Notes under the pieces: model-generated | What the model was told of the DNA's origin: nothing | Databases searched by the model: none | Seen by the model: only the letters and a program-made list of their open reading frames with translations | Shown here: positions 2,542-51,599 of the stretch, piece by piece | Numbering within the stretch: position 1 is the first letter of the stretch | Layout of the letters: each line of letters opens with the position of its first letter | Origin: Schizochytrium sp. TIO01 | Taxonomy: Eukaryota; Protista; Bigyra: Labyrinthulomycetes | Direction: 5' to 3' | Assembly: GCA_004764695.1 (NCBI GenBank) | Contig: SMSO01000031.1 | Location: 2,270,436-2,334,435, forward strand | Length of the DNA: 64,000 nucleotides | Translations under genes and position numbers: made by a program

Positions 2542-3115
2542 CGTCGAATTTCAAAATTCATGAGAAGCTCATACATGACATGATTCACCACTAAATCTGC
2601 CCAGATTTCCCCCTTGCTAACACCAACTGTTCTCTTATCTTCAATTTTGCGCACTTTTCAATTTCTCTTATCTTGCTTCATTTTATTTTTTTCTCTTTGG
2701 TTTGGTATAATATGCTGGACCTCAACCTATCCAGGTTTACTCTTACAGATACTTCTCTTGCTTTAAAGATGCATCATGCTAACATTAAGGGGTGACTGCT
2801 TTGTTCACTTCTCCCAGCTTCATTTGATTTGCTGCTGTTGCGTACGTGAACCAAACATTTTAATGTATACCTGCAAAATTTATATAGTGAAATATCGGGA
2901 AATAGTCAGAATTTTACAGCAGTGTTCTGCCCCTGACACCTGTTTGCCATCTCGAGCAAGTGTTGTTTATCAATTTAAGAATGATTGTGATAATTCTTTT
3001 TAAAGTTTTTTTTTTTTTTTTAGTTTTCAGGCTGAGAACGAGATATTGTGATTGACGACTTTGATTTTCGCCCTCCACCAAACAAACCTAAATCTTGGGC
3101 TACTGCACAACACAC

Positions 3116-5227
3116 ATGGCCCCGCGAAGGCTACCCAGGCGCTTGGTGCTGCTATGGTGGTTGGCAGTAGCAGCAGTCGGTGGCCTTTTTGAATGTCTTG
3201 TGAGTTGTGCGGAAGGTCACGTGGCAAGCTCGATCGTAGCGGATCCTGACAAGGAAAGAGACTCGCGCTGCAAGGAAGCCCCTAGTGACAATGATTTTAA
3301 GGAAGATCACAAGCCTAGGCCTTTAAGAGTCCTCGCAGTTGCTATGGCATTTAGAGGGCATGCAATGCCCATGTTTGAGCTCACAGACGAACTTCTTCGG
3401 CGAGGCCACGAAGTGCGAATGGCTATTCAAGATGAAGGACTACCATGGTACGCGGAACATCGATGTTTGGAGTCCAACTTCACCTCAAGCTGCTGTCAGG
3501 GCTACAGAGCATGCCCACGTGGGGAGCTTATATCTTTGGGAGGCTTAATTCATGGTGGATCTGCAGTTCGTAAACACTTGTACTCTGTAGTAGACGACTC
3601 CTCACTCATTCATGGTATATGGGGCGTTCTAAGGGACCTCTATCTTGGCCAGGCCACACGCACAGTCATACGCTTATGCAGGTTCTTACAAGGAGCAATA
3701 GACGCAAACGTCACATCATGTAACTTTATGGACCCCTTCAATGATGTAGAGCAAACCAAGGGTCATGATATTGGGCCAGATGAACTTGTTAATCCAGATA
3801 TGTGGTTTCCAGATGTGATCCTCTCCGATATTGGCGCAATAGGCGTTGCAGAAATTTCAGACTTGTTTAATGTTCCTTTGGTATTAAATAGCCCAACATT
3901 GTTTTTCTCCTTTGGTGACCCACAGCAAAGCTCATCGAGACACCTGCCAGGCTGGGGATCGGGGTTTTCCCGCCACATGGGCTTCCTAGACCGTTGCATC
4001 AATGTTGTGTATCCTAGGCTGATGGCAGCTGCACTCACACCAGACTTTGTACTACTAAATCAACTACTTGAGAATATGGGACTTCCTTCCTTCCACTCTC
4101 AGTATGCAATCTTTCAAGGTCGACATATGCTCGTTGACTCCGTGATAGGCTTTGAATATCCTCGCTTCCTTGAACCAACTGTGCACTTCATTGGTTTGCT
4201 GCAACGAGGAAACTACCATGGCCTTCCTGGTCAAGTACCCCAGCGCGAAGTGTCTCTAGGATGGCTTGCCGAGCAAGTTGCACAAGATCGCCCAATCGTG
4301 GTGGTTGCGTTGGGGTCAATTGGAATTGTAAGCACGGACCTTATGCAAGTGTTTTTGCACGGGATGCGCAACTTTTCAGTGATGTGGATTGTCTCTACAG
4401 AGCCTGGCCGTGAGCCATCTGGATCAGCGGAAGTTAATGCCGCTAATTTCCTTACCTTTCTTCAAAAGGTTCGGCCTCAACTTGCTCATGCATCGATGAA
4501 TGTAGCTCATCACGATCTCATAGCTTCGTTTATTGATTTTTGCCGTGATACAGAACACCTCACTGAATGGCACTTAGACTTATGTCCAGTCTCACGCGCC
4601 AGAACTCCCTCCCAAGCATCCTCATCATCTACTAAAGCTGATGAAGATCGTCAAGACGAGGGGTTGCAGTACGCGGTTCCCAATCACTTCTTCGTTCATG
4701 AGCAAACAAGTTACTTACCTTTGACAGAATTGCTCTCGCAGCCAAACATCCGTGCAACTGTATCATATTGTGGTCTCTCAATTGTACAGGAGAGTATTCG
4801 TGCACAGACGCCACTTGTTTGCCTTCCCCTTTTTGCAGACCAGTTTGATGTAGCTGCTCGTGTGGCTGATCTTGGTGTAGGCGTCACGATCAACCGTGAA
4901 CGCGCCGCTACTGAAGAGGATGTGGAAGAAGCTTTGAGAATAGAATATCCAAGAAGTGTTCTTGTTCGTGCAAGCCGCCTCTTTCGTAATTTGGACGGTA
5001 AACGGCTTGCTGGAGATGTGATTGAATATGTAGCGAGAAGGCCTCCGCAAAGCCTCTTTCGGTCGAAAAACAATTCATGGCCTTTTTTTCGTGCTTTAAA
5101 TTATGACATTATTGCATTAGTTCTAAGTGCAATCGTCTTTATTGCAAGTCTCTGTATTATGCTGCTAAAAGGTATACGCCGCGGACTCAGATTCAACAGC
5201 GTGCCACATGAGCCATGTACCAATTGA
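3116..5227 (+). CDS. UDP-glycosyltransferase (GT1/UDPGT family) with signal peptide and C-terminal TM helix
   Basis: Motifs RGHAMPMFELTDELLRRGHEV (catalytic His region), PDVILSD, VVVALGS and a UGT-signature-like SYCG...QESI...PLVCLPLFADQ. Hydrophobic N-terminus and C-terminal TM (IIALVLSAIVFIASLCIMLL) followed by a basic tail. First ATG at 3116. Confidence 0.9.
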   Translation: MAPRRLPRRLVLLWWLAVAAVGGLFECLVSCAEGHVASSIVADPDKERDSRCKEAPSDNDFKEDHKPRPLRVLAVAMAFRGHAMPMFELTDELLRRGHEVRMAIQDEGLPWYAEHRCLESNFTSSCCQGYRACPRGELISLGGLIHGGSAVRKHLYSVVDDSSLIHGIWGVLRDLYLGQATRTVIRLCRFLQGAIDANVTSCNFMDPFNDVEQTKGHDIGPDELVNPDMWFPDVILSDIGAIGVAEISDLFNVPLVLNSPTLFFSFGDPQQSSSRHLPGWGSGFSRHMGFLDRCINVVYPRLMAAALTPDFVLLNQLLENMGLPSFHSQYAIFQGRHMLVDSVIGFEYPRFLEPTVHFIGLLQRGNYHGLPGQVPQREVSLGWLAEQVAQDRPIVVVALGSIGIVSTDLMQVFLHGMRNFSVMWIVSTEPGREPSGSAEVNAANFLTFLQKVRPQLAHASMNVAHHDLIASFIDFCRDTEHLTEWHLDLCPVSRARTPSQASSSSTKADEDRQDEGLQYAVPNHFFVHEQTSYLPLTELLSQPNIRATVSYCGLSIVQESIRAQTPLVCLPLFADQFDVAARVADLGVGVTINRERAATEEDVEEALRIEYPRSVLVRASRLFRNLDGKRLAGDVIEYVARRPPQSLFRSKNNSWPFFRALNYDIIALVLSAIVFIASLCIMLLKGIRRGLRFNSVPHEPCTN

Positions 5228-8200
5228 TCGGTATGGCCTCCACGCGGTCGAGAGTTCAAGTAGTTCATATTCGTCCGGAAGTCGGACAACCTTTGTGTCT
5301 TCTACCTCTTCGCCATTAGATAAATTGTATAACCTTTTGAAACCCTTTCGTACAACCAAATCTCCATAAGGTAGCACATCAGGTCGACCCAAAGAAAAAA
5401 GAAGAAACATGTGAATACTCCAAGGTCCGATTCCCTTGACTTTTATAAGCGAGTTAAAGACCTCATCGTCTGACATTGAATCTAGACGTTTTCGAGAGAG
5501 ATCTTGAGTCTGAAAATGCTCAGATAGACTCTTTACATATTCTGCCTTTCGTGCGCTAAGTCCTGCACTTCGCAAGTCCTCGATCGATGTTTTCATTATC
5601 CGCGTAGGGGTGATATCGTTCTCTAAAAGTGCATCAAAACGCTTAAAAATGCTAGCGCCTGCCTTCGTCGAGATTTGTTGATAAATTATAGATCTCGTTA
5701 AAGCCATGAACGGGTCAGCCACACCTACCTTCTCCATGAGTTTTGTGGGAGCACCCACTTGATTGACCACGTTCGCCATTTTGGGATCATTTTTTGCAAA
5801 GTGTGCGAGCGCTTGAGCCATCAATTCGTCAGAAATCTTTTGGGGTGGCCCCTGACCCAAGAATTCGGTTTCACTAGGACGTTTCTTACGCTTAGGTTTC
5901 AATGGACCTTTGACAACGCTTTTGGCCTCATTCTTTTCTGCTAGAGTTTTCCTCTTGCTTGCAGTTTCTCCCTGAGAAACTGACTTGCGGCGCTTTGCTG
6001 GTGGTATTTCTTCTGCGGTTTTTAAATTGGATGCAGGCATGTAGTTTGCATCTTGCTTGTCTTCGTCGCTAGAAGTAGCCACCTCATTCTCCTCTTCCAA
6101 AACGTCATGTTTTCTTTTCCGAGCTGTGGTTCTACGGGTGGTGCTGGGTGGCTTCAGTGAAATATCAGTACTGGTACCTCCAGTAATTGAAATTGATGCA
6201 CTTGAAAGATACTCCTCATTATCAATGAAGGTCTCCAAATGAGACCGAAAGTCATTCGCTAAAGCGCCCCCGTAACGAGTTTTGTAGCGCTGCGCTGGTG
6301 CCTGAGGCTTAGACGACCCTTTCTTTGTTTTCGCTGTAGTTCTTTCTGTATCGAAAATGGATTCCATAGAGCTCATTGCGCGTTCTTGAAAAGTCCGTGA
6401 AAGAGGATCTAAATACTGGCGGAAGAAAGATCCGCAGATGCGGATATTAGCTGCCTCAGCTTCTTCAATTGTGTCGTGTGCAACAACAACAGTAAGTAAC
6501 AGGTTCTTCACTTTCTGTCCAGGTCGATCAATACGACCTTTCATCTGCTCCATTATATCTCCAGGTTGTGGCCGGGTAACAACTGCATCAGCGTACTCTT
6601 GTAGATTAAGGCCATGCGAGCCCTCACGGACAGTGACTATCAAGACATTCTTAGCATCTCCGCTACCAGGTAATGTCTCTGAATTAGGAATTGCTTTCAA
6701 CAGTAGCTTTTTCTCATTTTCATTAGCCGCAAATACGAGTGGGCGTCGTTTAGACTTGCGAAACGTTTCAACCTCGCTAGCGATTGCGTTTACAGCGAGA
6801 GTTTGCTCGTAGTTGTGGCGAAGAAAAGTTTTCAAATCCTTGTAAAGCGAACGTGCATCTGATACACCATGACCATGAAAACTCTGTTCTACCAGAGCAC
6901 GATATCTCTGTTTGGCATCGTCATCTAAATAAACAGGCCGAAATTCCATATGCCACTTACGAGGGTTTTCAGGGAGTGCAACGATGGCGTGCTCGCTCAA
7001 AAGAGTTGCAAGATACGGCTGAATTCGTGGTAGAGGACTACGTAACATGCGAATCAAAACAAAAAGGTCAGACATGCGGGAACGATACATAGTTGCAGAC
7101 AACATCATAACTCCACAGCGACTTGCCAACACCTGACGCCAAGCTGCAAAACTTTGCAATGCAGTTTGTGACTGCACTGAGACAGCTTCATCAATGATTA
7201 CCAAATCCCAACCCAAAGTTGAGAATGGATGATCGCGTGCTCTCCCAAGCGTTGTCAGCACGATGCTGTCCGCATCAACTTTGATGTGACGGCCCCTCGC
7301 AATACGGCGTGCTGGTTCCCCAGCGTTTGATATGCCTAAGGTCTTTAAAAATCCACTCTTGTCCTGAGCTAAGACATGGACACCCTTTGTATGCAGCATG
7401 ATTTGAGTGGTCCATTCTGAGATCAAAGAATTAGTAGGTAAAAGAACCAAGCTACCACGCAAAGTTTCACCTCGGCTTGAAATAATCTTTTGTGCACTAG
7501 CAATGCAGGCGAGCGCAGAAAGGGTTTTACCAGCACCAACGGTCGAAGCATCAGCGAAACCAAGCATTCCGTCTTGAATCCCCTCTGTTACTTTGTCAAC
7601 CGTTTCTTGCTGATGTGACCACAGTTTGGTTGTTACCTCAATCTGGGAAGCAAGCTGCTGCTTCATTCCATCTGCGTCTTCCTCTTCCACAGGAAAAGCC
7701 AGCTTGCGAAGGGATTCTATGAAGTCCACATATTGCAGGTTAGACTTGCTTAGAATGCGGAAGCGTGTGAACGTTTGAAATTGATGTTCCTTCACACGTT
7801 CAATACAACCAGGGTAGAGCGCAGCGAGGCCAAACATGACACGAAGCGCAGTCCCTTCATTAGTGAAGTCTTGCTGCCAGTGCTGTGAGTTCACTCCAGC
7901 TGATGCTGAAAGACTGAATGAGTTTCCTTCCATCATCATTATTTTCAGCAACAGGTCACGAAAGACGTGGGGTGTGATTGGAGTTGCCTCAAGAATGGAG
8001 CTCCAGTTGTAGACAGCGTCTACATTTCCATGTCGCCCGCATCTTGCCGCATCCTCAAGACGACGAAAGAGGTCCATGTAACTTGTGGTAGGCGTCTTCC
8101 CAGCCTTTGCTTTTTTTATTTTCAAACTAGCACTAGGTGTTGTAGAACACTCTGAAGATATATAGAATGCTTCCTCAACAAGTTGACGAAGCTCTCCGTA

Positions 8201-10894
8201 AAGTTCTTGCTCATCTAAAGGGGCATTGCATGGAACAAGCAGTGACGATGCATCAAATACAGGTATTTGTTGATTATTCACCCAAAATTCCAAGAGTTCA
8301 ATTTGTTCGCTATGATGTGTTCGCGCATCCTGCTCCAATATCTCCTGCTTTGCCATACGTCGAGTCTTACGCCGCGCAGGTGGGTCTGGTGGATCTTGGT
8401 CAGCATTGTAGCCACCTAGCTTGACTTCAGTCACCACATTTGTATTAACAGGATGATGTGACTTTGTAGGATCATCCCAAATCCAACGAAACCCTTGTGG
8501 TGGTGGAAAGTTAACTTTCACATGCTGAGGACCAAGGGCACTAAGACGCTTCCGAGCCTCGGCTACTAAAGGGTTATTCGTATCGAGGAAGCGGTTCGGG
8601 TTTTGCATACCAGAAGACTTTGTCTCTACTAATTTAACCAACAAGGGCTCCTTTGCATCACCTGCTAAAATCACAGAAAGCGCTGTTGGTGAGGCTTTGG
8701 TGGGCGAAAGAACGAATTGCCTGCCAAACAGCTGTAAGAACGCTGTTCGCGCTTCTAAAGGGGTAGGGCTTCGTCCATGCGGCGAAGAGGTAGCTTTTGC
8801 TCGTTGCAAACTGCCATCTGTAATGGAGTGAATGCTTTCAATATGTTGATCTTCGTCGAGTCCAGATGTCACTCCATAAGGTCCATCTCGCCAGCTAGCC
8901 GGGGCATGTTGCATCGTGTTCAACCACAATGCATTTTGTACATCTTGAAGAATCCCTGAAAGTAGATTCTCGTGTGGAGTCAATTTGAGTGTTTCTGTCA
9001 CAGTTCCTTGAAGAATAACCATATCTTTAGCAGCATCATCAAGGTTTTTGCTTTCTGGCATTTTATCTGAGTTGGCTCCAAGGAACTGCTGGATACGGAA
9101 AAGTTCGGCATCATCTTCTTGGCCTGCAAGTTGCTTGCGTACAGACCTTACGTTTAAATATCCAGAAATTCGATCAACAAGCATACCCAATGACCGGATG
9201 CTGTGCTGCAAAGTGTTATTTGGTGGCGAAGGCATAGCGGCTTGCAAGAAGAGCAATAAGTTTGCACTGAACCGAGCATCCATACTTGCTTTCATGGTCT
9301 CCATTTCCGCAACAGATGCAGGATGAACCATTCCTAGCATTGACTGAGTTACCTTGGGCTGAGGTATCTCCTTAACCTTCTCGGCCCAGGTTGGCTCCTG
9401 AAGGCAGGTTAGATAGCGACGAAACATATCTCGATCAGCAGCGTTGGCGACAGGAAACGGCCCCATAGATGCACATCGTAATGCATTGCGTAGTTGTACG
9501 CAAGCATCTTCATCATCCTCGATCACCAAGGTTTTTTCTCGTACTTGTTGCATAAACCCTCGCCATGGCCACAAAACAGTACGCACGTCTTCGTGAGCCT
9601 GCAGTGCCAAGGCTGTCTTTTGTACTCGATCAGAAAGCACTTCTGTCAATCGAAAGGATGAGTCAATATATGAGACTAAGCTGAGCCCAAGCAGATCCGG
9701 AAGAGAAAAGATGGCCTTCCTACGTGCAGGTGGGAAGTACGGGCAAACATCTCGCCATGCAATGGCAAAGAGACGCCAAAGAAGAAGGTGAGTTGCAGAT
9801 GCCCCTAGCTGGCCTATGCTTTGTGTCTGCAATAGTTGTTGGATAGCAAAGTTGATTTGTCGAGGCGTTGAGAAGCTTGCACCTCGAAGAATAGACTTAT
9901 GCAGCAGCGAGAGTGGAAGGTCAACCTCTAGCATTGTTTGTGATGGCGGGGGCAAAAAATTCTCTCCAATACTTTTGGACACTGTGCTCTTCGAAGATGT
10001 AAGAACGCCCTCGACCTTGAGATTAGCATTGGCATCCACTTCAGCCTCACTACGTTCTTCTACGAGAATGGGTTCCTCGTTAAGAATGTTTGAGGTTCCG
10101 TCTTGAAGAAGTTGCTCCGTGACGGCAATGACAATTGAGTGGTCCTCTTTTTTGTCTCCACTAAGATTTCCGTCGCGCCCTGACAGAACCTGAAAAACAT
10201 GTGTACTGCTGTCCAGATCCTGGAAATGAGCTTCTGTGAATGGCAATATAGTTGTATGCGGGTACGTATGTCGCACTTTGACAATCACACTTGGTGTAAG
10301 ACCACGAGCTTCAATGGTGCGGGCAAGATCTTCCTTTGTCTCCCAGATATTGTGCGATCTTGCGAGGTTCTCATACTTCAGCAACTTGCGAAGCTCTCGC
10401 GGGTATTCTTCTCCAAGCTCCTGCAATGCCTGGTCCAGTGCTGCTCCATCACAGAACTCACGACCCATCCAATTAATTGGAAGAATAGGCGTGAGATCTC
10501 CATTGCGTTCCCGTCGCGCGCCACATGCTTCGACTACAAATGCGTATCCAAAGAGATCTCCAGGTCTGGTCTTTGCCCGAATTCTCGCATCGTCCGAGAG
10601 CTCTTCAGGGTCTGCATCAAGGAGGTTTGGAGGTACCTTGAGACCTTTTTCTGCATCCACCCATGCTCTCAAAAACGCTGCAACTGTGCTCGGATCTTGG
10701 TGCCCCACTACATTCGCTATGGACTGTGCATCTGATCCAGATTCGTGCATCCGAAGAGCGCGTTCCATGTCCACAGTGGTCGGCACATCCCAGCATGACT
10801 GCCGCAGCCGAATCGCCGGCAGGAAAGCTGCTCCAGGGAGTTTGACTGACAATACGGTGCCTTTAGCTAGCAGGGCGCTGCGAAGGGCTTTCAT
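5165..10894 (-). CDS. Large SNF2/SF2-like helicase fused to C-terminal HhH-GPD (AlkA/Mag1-like 3-methyladenine) DNA glycosylase
   Basis: One uninterrupted ORF, open to 11092; first ATG at 10894; possible splice acceptor at 11034-11035. Helicase motifs: LWSHQ, ASTVGAGKT, LVLLPTNSLISEW, IIDEAV, LSAT, GSHGLNLQ, QMKGRIDRPGQ. Glycosylase motifs: SIIYQQIS, GLSARKAEY, VKGIGPWS (HhH), DVLPYGD, WRPYRS. Confidence 0.9.
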   Translation of the reverse strand: MKALRSALLAKGTVLSVKLPGAAFLPAIRLRQSCWDVPTTVDMERALRMHESGSDAQSIANVVGHQDPSTVAAFLRAWVDAEKGLKVPPNLLDADPEELSDDARIRAKTRPGDLFGYAFVVEACGARRERNGDLTPILPINWMGREFCDGAALDQALQELGEEYPRELRKLLKYENLARSHNIWETKEDLARTIEARGLTPSVIVKVRHTYPHTTILPFTEAHFQDLDSSTHVFQVLSGRDGNLSGDKKEDHSIVIAVTEQLLQDGTSNILNEEPILVEERSEAEVDANANLKVEGVLTSSKSTVSKSIGENFLPPPSQTMLEVDLPLSLLHKSILRGASFSTPRQINFAIQQLLQTQSIGQLGASATHLLLWRLFAIAWRDVCPYFPPARRKAIFSLPDLLGLSLVSYIDSSFRLTEVLSDRVQKTALALQAHEDVRTVLWPWRGFMQQVREKTLVIEDDEDACVQLRNALRCASMGPFPVANAADRDMFRRYLTCLQEPTWAEKVKEIPQPKVTQSMLGMVHPASVAEMETMKASMDARFSANLLLFLQAAMPSPPNNTLQHSIRSLGMLVDRISGYLNVRSVRKQLAGQEDDAELFRIQQFLGANSDKMPESKNLDDAAKDMVILQGTVTETLKLTPHENLLSGILQDVQNALWLNTMQHAPASWRDGPYGVTSGLDEDQHIESIHSITDGSLQRAKATSSPHGRSPTPLEARTAFLQLFGRQFVLSPTKASPTALSVILAGDAKEPLLVKLVETKSSGMQNPNRFLDTNNPLVAEARKRLSALGPQHVKVNFPPPQGFRWIWDDPTKSHHPVNTNVVTEVKLGGYNADQDPPDPPARRKTRRMAKQEILEQDARTHHSEQIELLEFWVNNQQIPVFDASSLLVPCNAPLDEQELYGELRQLVEEAFYISSECSTTPSASLKIKKAKAGKTPTTSYMDLFRRLEDAARCGRHGNVDAVYNWSSILEATPITPHVFRDLLLKIMMMEGNSFSLSASAGVNSQHWQQDFTNEGTALRVMFGLAALYPGCIERVKEHQFQTFTRFRILSKSNLQYVDFIESLRKLAFPVEEEDADGMKQQLASQIEVTTKLWSHQQETVDKVTEGIQDGMLGFADASTVGAGKTLSALACIASAQKIISSRGETLRGSLVLLPTNSLISEWTTQIMLHTKGVHVLAQDKSGFLKTLGISNAGEPARRIARGRHIKVDADSIVLTTLGRARDHPFSTLGWDLVIIDEAVSVQSQTALQSFAAWRQVLASRCGVMMLSATMYRSRMSDLFVLIRMLRSPLPRIQPYLATLLSEHAIVALPENPRKWHMEFRPVYLDDDAKQRYRALVEQSFHGHGVSDARSLYKDLKTFLRHNYEQTLAVNAIASEVETFRKSKRRPLVFAANENEKKLLLKAIPNSETLPGSGDAKNVLIVTVREGSHGLNLQEYADAVVTRPQPGDIMEQMKGRIDRPGQKVKNLLLTVVVAHDTIEEAEAANIRICGSFFRQYLDPLSRTFQERAMSSMESIFDTERTTAKTKKGSSKPQAPAQRYKTRYGGALANDFRSHLETFIDNEEYLSSASISITGGTSTDISLKPPSTTRRTTARKRKHDVLEEENEVATSSDEDKQDANYMPASNLKTAEEIPPAKRRKSVSQGETASKRKTLAEKNEAKSVVKGPLKPKRKKRPSETEFLGQGPPQKISDELMAQALAHFAKNDPKMANVVNQVGAPTKLMEKVGVADPFMALTRSIIYQQISTKAGASIFKRFDALLENDITPTRIMKTSIEDLRSAGLSARKAEYVKSLSEHFQTQDLSRKRLDSMSDDEVFNSLIKVKGIGPWSIHMFLLFSLGRPDVLPYGDLVVRKGFKRLYNLSNGEEVEDTKVVRLPDEYELLELSTAWRPYRSIGTWLMWHAVESESAAYTF

Positions 10895-12344
10895 TGCAGC
10901 TTCTTTGCCAAGTATTGCGGTTGGTGTCTCAAATATCCTCGTATTGAGTTGAGAAATTAGTTGTTGAACATCTTGAAGAGTTGCGGTGATGAACTCGTCG
11001 CACCGAGTTGGACCTGTGGCGGAACCATAGGAACTGAAGCGAACAAGGATTTTTTTTAATAATTTTAATTTTAAAAAATCATTTGAGATCAAGTTCTATT
11101 TATTCTCATAAATCAAAGTTTCGAGTTATGTGGGACTGCATAGAATTAACGTTTCTTTTGTCTAGGCGTGTGGTCAGCATACCAAGTTCGAGTCCTGAGG
11201 TAACTGTAATCAAACCGGATAACACTTACAGTGTACGCGGAGTCTTTGATTGTTACAAACATTGCGAGGTGGATGTACTTGATCACATGAAAGAAATGTA
11301 AATACGGCACGACATGTAAAACTCCGAACCTTTAAAATCAAAGCAAATAACAACTAGTATTTTACTTTGAAATAGTCATAGATTTTTGCTGTAAAGAAAT
11401 AAAGTAGAAGAAACAAACAATACTCCCTAGATTACTGTATAGAGAATTTCTTAGATAATCATGTTGGTTTGAGCGACTGCTCAAGGCAGTACAACATCGT
11501 TAATCTTGTGAGATGCGGTAGAACTTCTAGGTCAAGATTTGGTTACTTACAATACTTCCGGGATACCTGTAGAGACGCCTCACGCTTCAATTCGGCACTC
11601 AATGTTTATACAACTTTGCTTGATATTTATTTTTTAAAATTATGCTCATTGCAGAAAGTTTATCCTTTATTGTTTGAATATACGGGAAGGTTCAACTCAA
11701 GATAGACAAGGGTGTGGTACTGCAAGTTGCATAAAATAAAATCCACATTTATTTGTAAAAGCCTAATTAAGCAGATAAAAGTATTTTAATGTCATGATGC
11801 GGAATCTATATTCATACTGCCGAGGCAAAAAGGGGTGCGGCGATAAACTATTTAAAAGTGTCTTGCTCCTTCTTCGTAGATGAATTGGGAGTGAGCATAG
11901 TAGAGAAACAAACAAAAAAAGCGTACAAAGACATGCGCGTGGAGGTTGCCCAGAATCTACACTTATCGAGAGAACAAAGTGAGAAAAATGAGGTTTGATT
12001 GGAGAGGCAGGTTGAAAAGGAGGAGGAAATTGCTGTTGGGTATCGAGGTGTCGCTTTCAGACATGAAGATTGTAAATCCCTACGTGCAAACCATCATTCA
12101 GGTGATATATGAAAATGAAGAGGAGTCGTTCCATGCATTCTTTTGACAAGGCGAGGAGAGACAACTATATCGCACGCAAAAGTAATATCATAATTCACAT
12201 CTCATCGCTGGCATCAATTGAAGAAAACAGTGTCGGTGTTGTCTTCCCGATTTTCCACATGTCTTGCCTCACTGTCTGTGGCAATTGTGTTTACTTGCAG
12301 GAGATTATCTGCAATGCCAGGGCGCAGTAAGGATGCGTGAAAGC

Positions 12345-47200: not shown

Positions 47201-48047
47201 CTCACGCGAGTCTTGTCACTACCACCTGAACGCTTTCATTCCCAGCCACCTACTCCTCTTGTCTTCAAACTCCATGCGAACAGCACCCACCCAGCATTAG
47301 TTGTTTAAACTTCACCATTGTCTATCTTCATGACCGCCAGAAGCAATCAATTAACCAAAAACGCAAACAAACAGATAAAAACTCAAAGCTAACAGCATCG
47401 TAGCACTTTGCCCCCTCCGCGACTGACGCGTACAACGAGTGGCTGCGGCGTCTTCTGCCTAACCCGTATTAAACTCTCACCCCATCTAAACGTACTATTT
47501 TATAAGAACAGAACAGCCGTTCTTTTCCCCTCCCCGAGTTGAAAAGAACGATGAGAACAGTAACGTTCTTTGGCCGCATAAGTTAAATCTCAAAGAACGG
47601 AACATGTTATTGCATGATATGAGTTAAGGTATAATTAATTGATACAATAGGATTTGAAGAACCCAAAAATAAGTTGATGAAGAATTTGAAAAACTAACGA
47701 CGGGTGAAGTAGTACTACTACTCCTCTTCAATATCGCCAAGATAGAGCGGCTTCTGCTCAAAGCTAACTCCCGCGCTGGGTCAGCAAGCCTCGTGACAAC
47801 CCTCTTCTGAGGCGGCATCTCTCACGTACCTCGTGCGTGAGCTTGCGCTCATCCGAAGTTCCTTAGCTTTCTGAAGGAACGGGATCTAGCTGCTTTTGCT
47901 GCGTTTGTCGTCTTTGAATTCTAGTTGGCAATACGAACTGTTTCTTGGCTGTCTAGATTGCGAACGTGCGTGTGAATAGTGCCTGCAAGTTTATTGGCGA
48001 ACTTCTTTGCTGGAACTAGCTTGATTTGCAACTGGAATTGGAGCAAA

Positions 48048-51000
48048 ATGGGCGGAATCAATACAGATGGCAAACTTCGCGTAGCATACAGTGTTAGCGG
48101 CAGGGGACTTTGTAGAGGTCGTGGTTGTAACAAGAAGATTGCTAAGGATGAACTCCGTGTGTGCAACGAGGTTCTGGTCAGGTTCGGTGGTAAAATGCGC
48201 CCTCAAACCATGTTTTACCATTTGGACTGCTTCCCGCAGGCTGTCTGGAAAAAGTTTGAGAATGTTGACATGGAGGGGTTAAGATTGGAGGACTCGCTCA
48301 AGGTTCTCAAGCTTATGGGGGGCAAAGAATCTGGATCTTCGGCATCGAGTTCAACACCTGCTGCTTCAAAGACCGCGTCGACAGGGCAACCGAAGTTCAA
48401 TACTACACCGGGACATGAAAACAACGCATCTCGTGTTTATGATCCAAGGCTTCTACCTGTAGTGGAAGCCGGAGCTCTATTAAAGTCCCCCGAGGTTGGT
48501 TTGGAGGAGCGATTTGTAGACATGCTTATGCCATTTCAGCGTCAGGGTGTTGCGTTTGCTGTTAAAAAGTGCAATGGCAGAGCGTTGATTGGAGATGAGA
48601 TGGGACTCGGTAAAACTGTACAAGCGATTGGGTTTGCGCTTGCATTCCGTAAGGAGTGGCCTTTGCTAATTATAACACCGTCTTCTGTTAAATTGAACTG
48701 GGCTGACGAGCTAGAGCAGTGGGCACCGACTCTCCAACCAGGTGAAATTAATGTGATCAAGTCCCGGTCATTTCCTGGTGATCTGAAAAAACCTGTTACG
48801 ATCATCACATATGGAATGTTTGCTCGCGGAAGCAAGGTTGTAGATGCTATTGAAGCACAGAAATTTCGCGTTGTTGTGGTTGATGAAAGCCATTACCTTA
48901 AGAACTCCACTGCAATCAGGACTCAAAAGATTTCCCCCATTCTTAAACAAGCGAGACGAGTAGCTTTGCTTAGTGGTACTCCTGCACTTGCAAGGCCAAT
49001 CGAACTTTGGACTCAAGTTCATGCCTTGCGTCCTGATATATTCCCAAAGTATCGAGAATTTACCAATCGGTTTTGCAACCCCACACGGCGACCATGGGGC
49101 ATGGACTATAATGGAGCAAGCAACCTTGAAGAACTCCACGAAAAGCTGCAAGGTCTCTTGGTGCGGCGACAGAAACGAAATGTTCTCCGCCAACTCCCTC
49201 CAAAGCGACGGCAGCTCCTCCGCCTTGATGTGGCTCCGGGTGCAGCTTGTATGAAGGAGGTCAAGAGCCTGATGGCGAGACTTCGAGACGTTGATATGAA
49301 TAATCTTCTCGCTGCTGCAGAAGAGGGTGGTATGGATCGCGAACTTTATCGAGAGGTAATGAGTGCACGTTCTGAACAACGTCAAACTCTGATGAAACTC
49401 TATAAAGCTACTGGCGAGGCTAAGGTTGCTGCAGCTGCAGAATATGTAAGCTCAACTGCAGAGAGTGGAGAGAAACTTATTGTTTTTGCCCATCACCTGG
49501 ATGTACTCGACGCCTTGCAGACTGAATTGACAAGAAAAAAAAATTCTTTGATCCGTATTGATGGTTCAGTTTCTACCACAGACCGTCATGCTTACGTTAA
49601 ACGCTTTCAAGACCCCAATTCAGGCGTGACAGTTGCTCTCCTTGGACTTACTTCAGCTGGGCAAGGAATTACATTAACCGCTGCATCAACAGTAATATTT
49701 GTAGAAATGCATTGGACCCCCGGCGTTCTGGTCCAGGCTGAGGACCGTGCGCATCGCATTGGACAAGTGAATGCTGTAAATATCATTTATCTAACTGTTC
49801 GCGGAACCCTCGATGATATTGTTTGGCCGATGGTACGGCGCAAGCTGGATACTGTTGGAAAGGCACTTGATGGCGTCCAGCATGAGAATATGTTTGATCG
49901 AACTCAGAAGACCCTAATGGATGCCAATCATGTCGATCTTAAGGCAGCACATCATATCGAAGAAGATGAAAGCGGCCATATCGGGAATTTGGACGGACAA
50001 ACATCTGTGAACTATCCCAAAGGCGATGTTCGTTCTTGGTTTTCAACTTCTGGTGCTTCTCCACTCGTAATGACGCCAAAGCGAAAGGTAGATCGCGAAG
50101 CAGATATTATAGTTTCGGAAACTGAGGTTTCTGATGTTACACCCCTAGCAGACCGTACACCGAGAAGGAAGCATGCACGATTGCGAGAACCTAATCTTGG
50201 TGAACCAGCTATTAACGAACAGGTTTCGCCTAGTGCCCCGTCTGAACCAGATGTATTTGACTTGACCATGTCGAATGACGCGTTCGAGACCTTCTCAACG
50301 CCAGCCAAAAAGGATTCTTTTTCTACGAAGAAGCCCTCGAAAGTGCTCATGGATGATTTTGAGGCCTTTGGAACACCAACTGGAAAAGTCTCATCCACAA
50401 GCAAGGCTACAAAAGTGTCTAATGATAGGTTGGGAGCCTTTACAACGCCGGCTAGACAAACACCAACTTCTGGGAGTAAGCTTTCAAAAGCAACACCATT
50501 TACGGACGTCGACTTACACGATGAAATTGAGGATGATGATAGTGAGCCTGTAGATAGTGCGCAAGAAGCATTAGCCAAAAGCCTCCATTTCTCTGTATCT
50601 GGAAATACTGGGCGCATATTTCTCTTTGACAGCAAGAAAGAGCCCTATGGGATCAATTTTGCTGCTAATATTGCCTTAGAAAAATCATGGCAAGATGTGA
50701 AAGACCTACCCAGCATGCTGCAGGATAGCAAACCCGTGCAACGAGCCGTGGAGAGATTTGCTCGCCAATGGGAAAGTTTGCGTTCAGCCGAGCGAAATGC
50801 GCTTGTTGATCAGGTTATTCGTCCTCCACTCTTGCCCCTTGTACAAGACTTGTATGCCAAACGAAAAGCCCAAGGACTTTGCTTTGAACGGTATATGGAA
50901 AAATCCCCAGGAGTGAATATAACTACATGTGATAAAGCTGATGAAGGCCAAGCTTCATCTTCAAGTGCAGAAATAGACGTACAGGCAGAAAAGGTTCCGA

Positions 51001-51599
51001 CTTGCATCGAGTGTAGCAAACCCATTCCTGAAGACTTGCTTAAACTCCAAGTGACAACACTATGTTCTTTCGACTGTCATAGCAAGTACCGTATTAAACT
51101 AAGTGGATCCGCCATTCGTCGCCAGCTTTTCTCTTTAGAGCATGGCATATGCCGTAAGTTTGTACATACAAGGTGCAAATGCAACAGCACCATCACCAAT
51201 GTTTGCTATATTTCAAATCTGTCAACTAACTAACACAAGTCTGAAATGGTCACGACAATAAAAATCGCAGAGGTTTGTAATGAGAATGCGCAAGCTCTGT
51301 ATGAAAAGGTCAAGGCTGTAACATCTGCAGAGCGCTATCAAATGCTTGTTGGCACAAAATTTAAGCCCACTAAGCAGCGCTTAGAGAACCCACGGGCTGG
51401 GGATTTCTGGCAGGCTGATCACATTCAAGCAGTGTCGCTTGGTGGAGGTCAAGCATGTATGCTAAACTTCCGAACTTTATGCTGTCCTTGTCATGAACGG
51501 GAGACAAAGGCTCTGATGAGAGTTCTCAAGAATCAAAAACTAGAAAAAGCCGCTCAAGGGAGCAAAGACATCCGTGGATTCTTTTCTGTCGCTAAGTAA
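48048..51599 (+). CDS. ZRANB3: ZRANB3/SMARCAL1-type SNF2 annealing helicase with HNH endonuclease and N-terminal PARP-type zinc finger; exons 48048-51153 and 51271-51599
   Basis: Motifs LMPFQRQGV, GDEMGLGKT, VVDESH, LLSGTP, QAEDRAHRIGQ. Intron gtaagt(51154)...actaac...cgcag(51270) joins HGIC|QVCN in frame. HNH motif WQADHI...GGG...NFRTLCCPCH. Confidence 0.92.
51154..51270 (+). other. Spliceosomal GT-AG intron (117 nt) in the ZRANB3-like gene
   Basis: GTAAGT donor, ACTAAC branch-like motif near 51225 and CAG acceptor. Removing it restores a CxxC motif and the reading frame. Confidence 0.9.

Follow-up and report, generated by a model that had tools for sequence, protein, structure and literature searches.

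A predicted Snf2-like ATPase joined to an AlkA/Mag-type DNA glycosylase in the thraustochytrid Schizochytrium sp. TIO01

The reading frame and its continuity

In a stretch of 64,000 nucleotides of the Schizochytrium sp. TIO01 genome (GenBank assembly GCA_004764695.1, contig SMSO01000031.1, positions 2,270,436 to 2,334,435; hereafter the window), the minus strand carries a frame of 1,975 codons (5165-11092) that contains no stop over 5.9 kb. Its first ATG, codon 67 at window position 10894, matches the N-terminus of the orthologue of Hondaea fermentalgiana in the alignment. The protein comprises, from the N- to the C-terminus, a module of ~1,080 residues, a divergent Snf2-like ATPase, a basic linker of ~170 residues and an AlkA/Mag-type HhH-GPD DNA glycosylase (Table 1). 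A sequence-only reading of the same DNA had placed the fusion of a SNF2-like translocase with a glycosylase at 5165-7630. One polypeptide in one frame is what we also found, but the range proposed there holds only the C-terminal ~820 residues, 43% of the gene. Rather than standing alone, these ~820 residues close a protein of ~1,900 residues, of which the N-terminal module together with the ATPase shows homology to giant-virus helicases. Every motif string quoted in that reading was recovered at the expected place of the translated frame. Judging from the sequence, we consider it very probable that the fusion gene is real and that both enzymatic cores are competent, the two being taken as one joint claim.

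Table 1 Coordinates of the fusion gene, its domains and motifs, and other genes referred to in the text (window positions, except for the Tag-type genes; NLS, nuclear localization signal; HTH, helix-turn-helix; ORF, open reading frame; AF2, AlphaFold2)
Feature	Position	Strand	Basis or remark
Likely coding sequence	5168..10894	minus	1,909 aa, first ATG (ORF codon 67) to TAG at 5165-5167; no intron
Contig ends, possible transcript 5' end	10988..11008	minus	Public-run contigs; 94-114 nt upstream of ATG
Alpha/beta region with small HTH/Myb-like three-helix unit (ORF aa ~101-155)	9941..10894	minus	AF2 model; conserved in orthologues
Helical module, motifs LxKSIxRG (9881-9913) and LWRLF..x..D..PY (9737-9787)	8873..9940	minus	Also in giant-virus helicases
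Alpha/beta region preceding ATPase, conserved blocks RxxFLxLFG, PPxGFxW, FDxS	7673..8872	minus	Alignment, AF2 model
Divergent Snf2-like ATPase core	6368..7660	minus	Pfam, AF2 model, Foldseek, motifs conserved in orthologues
Q-like motif KLWSHQ	7598-7627	minus	
Motif I DASTVGAGKT	7520-7552	minus	
Motif Ia	7421-7450	minus	
Motif II DEAV	7172-7201	minus	
Motif III SAT	7079-7108	minus	
Motif V GSHGLNLQ	6599-6622	minus	
Motif VI QMKGRIDRPGQ	6515-6547	minus	
Linker	5861..6367	minus	Poorly conserved, rich in Lys, Ser, Glu, Thr; identity 0.13-0.22 to orthologues
NLS-like basic motifs in linker	RKRK 6110-6121, PPAKRRK 5984-6004, KPKRKKR 5879-5899	minus	
AlkA/Mag-type HhH-GPD glycosylase domain	5168..5860	minus	HhH GIGPWS 5405-5440, catalytic-position Asp in LPYGD 5342-5374
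UDP-glycosyltransferase-like ORF, convergent neighbour	3095-5227	plus	
Canonical SNF2 ATPase	47979-51233	plus	SNF2-rel_dom 125 bits, Helicase_C 57 bits; 40 kb from fusion gene
Tag-type (PF03352) genes	G000:C32:2564290-2564847 and G000:C33:3695203-3695736		Elsewhere in the genome

Contigs built from the public runs X2 and X4 (7,949 and 8,202 nt) cover 5300-11008 and 5300-10988, respectively, without a joint, gap or indel. They cross the linker, and two separate mRNAs are not indicated by these runs, which are presumed to be RNA. The opposite ends of the contigs were computed to lie near 3060 and 2787, just upstream of the convergent gene at 3095-5227, and the pattern looks like merged transcripts of two convergent genes. 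An A/T-rich low-complexity stretch at 11050-11074, upstream of the gene, was skipped as a repeat in read placement and may contribute to the contigs stopping near 11000. Eight positions (6493, 6548, 7073, 7572, 8092, 9218, 10117 and 10460) differ from the window, identically in three runs of differently labelled organisms, which looks like a strain difference.

Glycosylase domain, ATPase core and N-terminal module

The last ~230 residues of the protein align end to end with solved short AlkA/Mag enzymes in a search of PDB sequences: Bacillus halodurans 2h56 (E 1.5e-27), Deinococcus AlkA2 2yg8 (E 1.9e-26), S. pombe Mag1 3s6i (E 1e-25) and S. pombe Mag2 4b21 (E 7e-24; also 4hsb). The family profile matched 2h56 at E 1e-45, and Pfam detected HhH-GPD at ORF aa 1800-1929 (E 3e-15, 56.9 bits against a cut-off of 26.2). 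GIGPWS is aligned to GIGRWT and LPYGD to PADD of Mag1, the second Asp of PADD being the catalytic position. The Gly of the helix-hairpin-helix (HhH) and the catalytic-position Asp are invariant across 12 distant orthologues and kept in a divergent diatom clade too; two members of that clade (P0020, P0024) have an insert of ~90 residues within the domain, yet retain GIGDW and YGDL. The order proposed from the sequence alone, a basic NLS-like linker followed by an HhH-GPD domain with HhH and catalytic-position Asp intact, was therefore confirmed by both the sequence and Pfam. The residue after GIGP is Trp, as in Mag1 (GIGRW) and 2h56 (GIGQW). Since this Trp sits where bifunctional HhH glycosylases carry their catalytic Lys, the sequence suggests a monofunctional glycosylase. 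The position aligned to His in the QQLHSKAA stretch of Mag1 is Ser, the same as in Mag2.

In addition, hundreds of stand-alone proteins of ~200 aa from bacteria, archaea and Mucoromycota, annotated as 'DNA-3-methyladenine glycosylase II', share 40-45% identity with the domain. These proteins, Mag1 (3s6i), AlkA2 (2yg8) and 2h56 are all like the window protein in the HhH GIGxW, the catalytic-position Asp and overall domain length. Enzymes of the Mag1/AlkA2/2h56 type stand alone with ~200-230 aa, whereas here the domain follows an ATPase and ends a protein of 1,909 aa. By these comparisons the glycosylase domain is an ordinary AlkA-II/Mag member joined to something unusual.

The ATPase core carries motifs I, Ia, II, III, V and VI of helicase superfamily 2, all in order, and GAGKT, DE, SAT, GLNLQ and GRxDRPGQ are conserved family-wide. 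The Walker A Lys, the DE of motif II and the arginines of motif VI are conserved in orthologues of three eukaryotic supergroups. We take GSHGLNLQ and QMKGRIDRPGQ to resemble Snf2 motifs V and VI; motifs I, Ia, III, V (GLNLQ) and VI (QxxGRxxRxGQ) are common to known Snf2 ATPases and the fusion ATPase. An AF2 model of ORF aa 1060-1600 (m6dc9b26321d3; predicted local distance difference test, pLDDT, 86.8; predicted template modelling score, pTM, 0.83) shows the Snf2-type fold, with two RecA-like lobes and Snf2-specific helical elements. Its best 50 Foldseek matches in the PDB are all Snf2-family proteins (E 4e-18 to 4e-14), with query-normalised template modelling scores of ~0.55-0.60 for most of these 50, and include Chd1, ISW1, CSB, INO80, SMARCAD1, DDM1, Mot1, ZorD, a Sulfolobus Rad54-like protein and Rad5. 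The two-lobe fold with Snf2-type helical elements is common to Chd1, ISWI, CSB/Rad26, INO80, DDM1, Mot1, RapA and ZorD. When the family profile was compared with PDB sequences, only glycosylases matched until viral members were added, after which bacterial RapA appeared at 4e-5; RapA is the best sequence-profile link of the fusion ATPase. NCBIfam gave only sub-threshold matches (RapA, PLD anti-phage protein, DpdE and DrmD). These results support the assignment as a SNF2-like translocase at the level of fold and motifs. The two RecA lobes had been described as compact; at ~430 residues, however, the core has a size ordinary for Snf2. Between the core and the glycosylase lie three basic linker motifs, which we read as pointing to a nuclear protein.

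The N-terminal ~1,080 residues are conserved in all orthologues, and Pfam found no family in the first ~1,150 ORF residues. The AF2 model of this region (me1920b05784c) reached a pLDDT of 82.7 and a pTM of 0.80. VIA gave weak HTH/Myb matches to it (Z 3.5-4.1), and a Foldseek search of the whole N-terminal model, whose sub-domains were not folded singly, gave no PDB match at E <= 0.001. With VIA-align, five structures of the MgsA C-terminal domain (2r9g, 8g28, 3pvs, 3bge and 2qw6) were placed on the helical block at Z 3.9-4.5, covering model residues 319-452 with a root-mean-square deviation of 2.7-3.7 over 84-97 residues, which is below the trust level for helical matches. MgsA_C (PF12002) was not matched by Pfam in 12 family members at E up to 5, no MgsA chain was among the PDB profile matches at E up to 10, and the ESM Atlas returned no usable match bearing on this likeness. 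A hidden Markov model (HMM) of the helical block reached 175 proteins among 1.84 billion cluster representatives, mostly of 1,200-1,350 aa and some stand-alone with ~270-365 aa; MgsA was not reached among these representatives, and the block looks like a small family. For homology of the helical block to MgsA/RarA there are weak structural hints only, and the HMM searches fail to reach MgsA. A search of the 64-Mb assembly for PF12002 at E <= 0.001 gave no match, the same search having matched 9 of 14 control bacteria; therefore, no canonical WRNIP1/Mgs1-type protein was detected. The stand-alone proteins of ~270-365 aa (P0204, P0208, P0211, P0214, P0215 and P0219-P0225) correspond to the helical KSIRRG module without the ATPase, and Pfam found no family in the eight of them that were scanned. 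Similar short helical-module proteins of Pandoravirus and Hyperionvirus are present in BFVD.

The closest relatives without a glycosylase are giant-virus proteins of ~1,250 aa annotated as 'SNF2 family helicase' or 'DEAD/SNF2-like helicase' (Moumouvirus YP_007354283 and others), and their N-terminal ~800 residues are homologous to the N-terminal ~1,080 residues of the fusion. In BLASTP against the Moumouvirus protein P0072, the ATPase was 31% identical over 504 residues and the helical block (LxKSIRRG, LWRLF..ED..PY) was also aligned. The N-terminal block was found by tblastn in 16 of 27 giant-virus loci of IMG/VR, and the N-terminal model matched predicted structures of Edafosvirus (4e-22), Pithovirus, Pandoravirus, Megavirus and Hyperionvirus in BFVD. 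No AlkA-like domain was found in the viral protein or within 6 kb of it at the 27 viral loci. The helicases of Moumouvirus, Edafosvirus, Pithovirus and Megavirus thus have a homologous N-terminal module and ATPase in the same order; they end after the ATPase (~1,200-1,350 aa), whereas the window protein and 22 relatives add the linker and the glycosylase. Several giant-virus genomes contain two paralogues of the N-terminal module with the Snf2-like helicase, as in the pairs L003/L004 (IMGVR_UViG_3300042922_001492, 9137-34565), L014/L015 and L016/L019; on one viral contig the two helicase copies adjoin each other in opposite orientation.

Distribution and phylogeny of the fusion

Among 78 homologues, 23 carry the glycosylase, with the same domain order and frame, and the fused proteins range from 1,630 to 2,590 aa across many sources. 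They belong to Labyrinthulomycetes, diatoms, Euglenozoa and Picozoa and include proteins of Hondaea fermentalgiana (73% identity), the diatom Seminavis robusta, Euglena gracilis, Diplonema papillatum, Rhynchopus humris, Artemidia motanka and two Picozoa single-cell genomes; further orthologues are 58% and 51% identical. Complete transcriptome ORFs with the fusion were found in E. gracilis, A. motanka and R. humris. Orthologues that are always split, which would have spoken against the fusion proposed earlier, are therefore not what the databases contain, with 23 fused homologues and several of them single transcriptome ORFs.

In a quick maximum-likelihood tree of the ATPase (IQ-TREE, unrooted), all fusions fall into one 28-row clade with a Shimodaira-Hasegawa-like approximate likelihood ratio test (SH-aLRT) support of 98. 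A branch with a support of 100 separates a 32-row clade, composed of the fusions and four basal rows without a glycosylase, from a 45-row glycosylase-less clade that includes Moumouvirus; the viral helicases form a clade apart from the fusions. Five rows of the fusion clade have no detected glycosylase, and at least two of these look like truncated models: P0026 ends at the end of the ATPase, and the cluster of P0019 has a longer member annotated as a glycosylase. On the simplest reading of the tree, the fusion would have arisen once and then been inherited vertically or passed between eukaryotes. Being unrooted, the tree gives no direction of transfer between virus and cell. The diatom-clade proteins P0020, P0024 and P0028 carry an N-terminal PTM/DIR17-like Tudor domain (PF21743) above the cut-off; no glycosylase was detected in P0028. 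Tudor domains being readers of chromatin marks, their presence in the diatom clade points to an action on chromatin.

The names of these proteins in databases are automatic only ('DNA-3-methyladenine glycosylase 1', 'putative helicase'). Full-text searches, which many subscription papers lay beyond, found no description of a motor-glycosylase architecture, nor does such a fusion appear in an evolutionary review of conflict systems in eukaryotes (PMC3417536). The earlier view of an uncharacterised architecture is consistent with the literature found, but the architecture is not unique: it belongs to a conserved family present in public databases under automatic names.

Proposed function and genomic setting

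The reading we favour, and regard as mildly probable, is that the protein is a nuclear, monofunctional, motor-coupled base-excision enzyme for the motor-assisted repair of base damage. The Snf2-type motor would run along duplex DNA, possibly nucleosomal DNA, with the strands left paired, and would spend ATP on this movement or on distorting the DNA. Its action would expose damaged bases to the glycosylase, tethered by the flexible basic linker of ~170 residues, and the glycosylase would flip alkylated or otherwise aberrant purines out of the helix and remove them; the abasic site produced would pass into ordinary base-excision repair. Targeting or regulation of the motor is the probable role of the large N-terminal module. 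The proposals of the sequence-only reading, that chromatin is scanned or remodelled and that foreign modified DNA may be a target, are likewise interpretation.

Several observations weigh against motor-coupled base excision by this protein. The Pfam match to SNF2-rel_dom (ORF aa 1185-1352) is barely above the cut-off (29.0 against 24.9 bits), and the fusion ATPase is very divergent from known Snf2 proteins, the canonical SNF2 of the same window reaching 125 bits. Of the Pfam families expected beforehand, HhH-GPD, SNF2-rel_dom and ResIII (ORF aa 1156-1336) were found, but Helicase_C was not detected in the window protein and matched 1 of 12 orthologues at E 0.16. The His usual in Snf2 motif II is missing, the sequence being DEAV here and DECV in Hondaea instead of DEGH or DEAH. 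The replacement of the DExH His by Val had been pointed out from the sequence; DEAV is indeed present, but the Val is particular to this genome, and Cys after DE is conserved in at least 90% of 12 aligned orthologues. In the viral relatives the motor works with no glycosylase attached and must therefore have its own function. With respect to the glycosylase, Mag2 aligns about equally well as Mag1 and has the same catalytic-position Asp. S. pombe Mag2 is reported to be without glycosylase activity, and the conserved Asp therefore does not prove catalysis. Furthermore, the public runs X2 and X4 are only guessed to be RNA, and their contigs cannot prove a single transcript. Six of the eight differences from the window are non-synonymous (T1534S, M1340I, D1174G, P1001S, N625K and E326K), a count too small to infer relaxed constraint.

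The close relationship of the motor and N-terminal module to a giant-virus family, to which they are sister, can also be accommodated if the glycosylase acts on deliberately modified bases, either epigenetic or hypermodified bases of the cell itself or those of giant-virus DNA, in which case the protein would be an antiviral or demodifying enzyme coupled to a motor. The host protists are exposed to giant viruses, prokaryotic Snf2-like defence proteins (DrmD, DpdE, PLD anti-phage protein and ZorD) turn up among the weak matches by sequence or fold, separate Tag enzymes are available in the genome for 3-methyladenine (3meA), and Tudor domains occur in the diatom clade. We nevertheless regard such a role as unlikely, as the glycosylase domain is ordinary AlkA-II/Mag, 40-45% identical to housekeeping enzymes, the phyletic pattern tracks no known modified base, and the gene is single-copy in a context that is neither variable nor island-like. 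Base J occurs in Euglenozoa but is not known from diatoms or thraustochytrids. A related and quite improbable proposal is that a giant-virus-like Snf2 motor was captured by, or is co-ancestral with, a cellular lineage and that an alkylpurine-type glycosylase was added, giving an ATP-driven remover of a specific modified base. If this were true, the target would be the cell's own chromatin or invading viral DNA, and the protein would be a eukaryotic counterpart of bacterial motor-plus-nuclease or glycosylase defence.

The near-equal alignment of Mag2 (4b21, 4hsb) and Mag1, at E 7e-24 and 1e-25, and the Mag2-like Ser at the His position of QQLHSKAA raise a different alternative, in which the glycosylase domain is a catalytically silent reader of lesions or abasic sites, like Mag2, that recruits the motor, so that the protein would be a damage-targeted remodeller acting, for example, at stalled forks or polymerases. 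The weak likeness of the N-terminal module to the C-terminal domain of MgsA/RarA, a fork-associated ATPase, would fit; that likeness, however, is weak (Z 3.9-4.5) and has no HMM support. The HhH, the catalytic-position Asp and flanking residues are invariant in very distant orthologues, and the domain shares as much identity with active bacterial-type enzymes as with Mag2, leaving a silent reader distinctly unlikely. The chance that the fusion is an artefact, with two adjacent genes read as one for want of a stop between them, is close to negligible. The linker is poorly conserved and shorter gene models exist, JGI P0001 (1,420 aa) being without the N-terminus and P0019 and P0026 without the glycosylase; on the other hand, 23 homologues, complete transcriptome ORFs among them, have the same order and frame, and the cluster of P0019 includes the longer glycosylase-annotated member. 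We rejected this explanation on the unbroken frame of 5.9 kb, the fused orthologues and the public-run contigs, which are continuous over 5850-6400.

A Snf2 ATPase and a base-flipping enzyme are also combined in one polypeptide in JBP2 of kinetoplastids (thymine hydroxylase and SNF2) and in DNMT5 (cytosine methyltransferase and SNF2), which follow the same design logic. The fusion differs from both in that its partner removes the base, its ATPase is of a different, virus-related lineage and a large extra N-terminal module is present. The theme of a Snf2 motor with a DNA-base enzyme is already known from JBP2 and DNMT5, and the fusion, with a glycosylase as partner, would lengthen that short list. 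The plant proteins DEMETER and ROS1 are likewise large multi-domain HhH-GPD proteins that act in chromatin, but they come from the Nth-like bifunctional branch, lack an ATPase and need separate remodellers, whereas the window protein carries its own ATPase and an AlkA/Mag-type domain. How glycosylases search for lesions in chromatin is an open problem, and the known eukaryotic systems rely on separate remodellers; a single-chain motor-glycosylase in stramenopiles, euglenozoans and picozoans would be a direct model of motor-assisted lesion search. In addition, the link to a widespread, unstudied giant-virus helicase family offers a way into the function of the viral protein and into gene flow between viruses and protists. 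Since thraustochytrids of this kind are culturable and transformable, knockout and methyl methanesulfonate (MMS) tests are feasible.

The fusion gene is single-copy in the 64-Mb, 37-contig assembly, its base composition is unremarkable, and its neighbours are ordinary eukaryotic genes (an FHA protein, a UDP-glycosyltransferase, a protein kinase, a canonical SNF2 with a PARP-type zinc finger and a cyclic nucleotide-binding protein). An endogenous giant-virus insert was rejected on the host-type neighbours, the base composition, the single copy and orthologues at 73, 58 and 51% that fit vertical descent. Elsewhere, the genome has three more HhH-GPD loci and two genes for Tag-type (PF03352) 3-methyladenine glycosylase I; neither AAG/MPG (PF02245) nor a second copy of the AlkA/Mag-type domain of the fusion was found in the genome. 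With two Tag-type enzymes present, the fusion protein need not be a general 3meA enzyme. The 3' ends of the fusion gene, whose stop lies at 5165-5167, and of the UDP-glycosyltransferase-like ORF on the plus strand overlap by 63 nt (5165-5227). The minus-strand stop is genuine, because the C-terminus ...AAYTF is kept in orthologues. The N-terminal PARP-type zinc finger of the canonical SNF2 at 47979-51233 scores 37.8 bits, slightly below the Pfam cut-off of 39.3.

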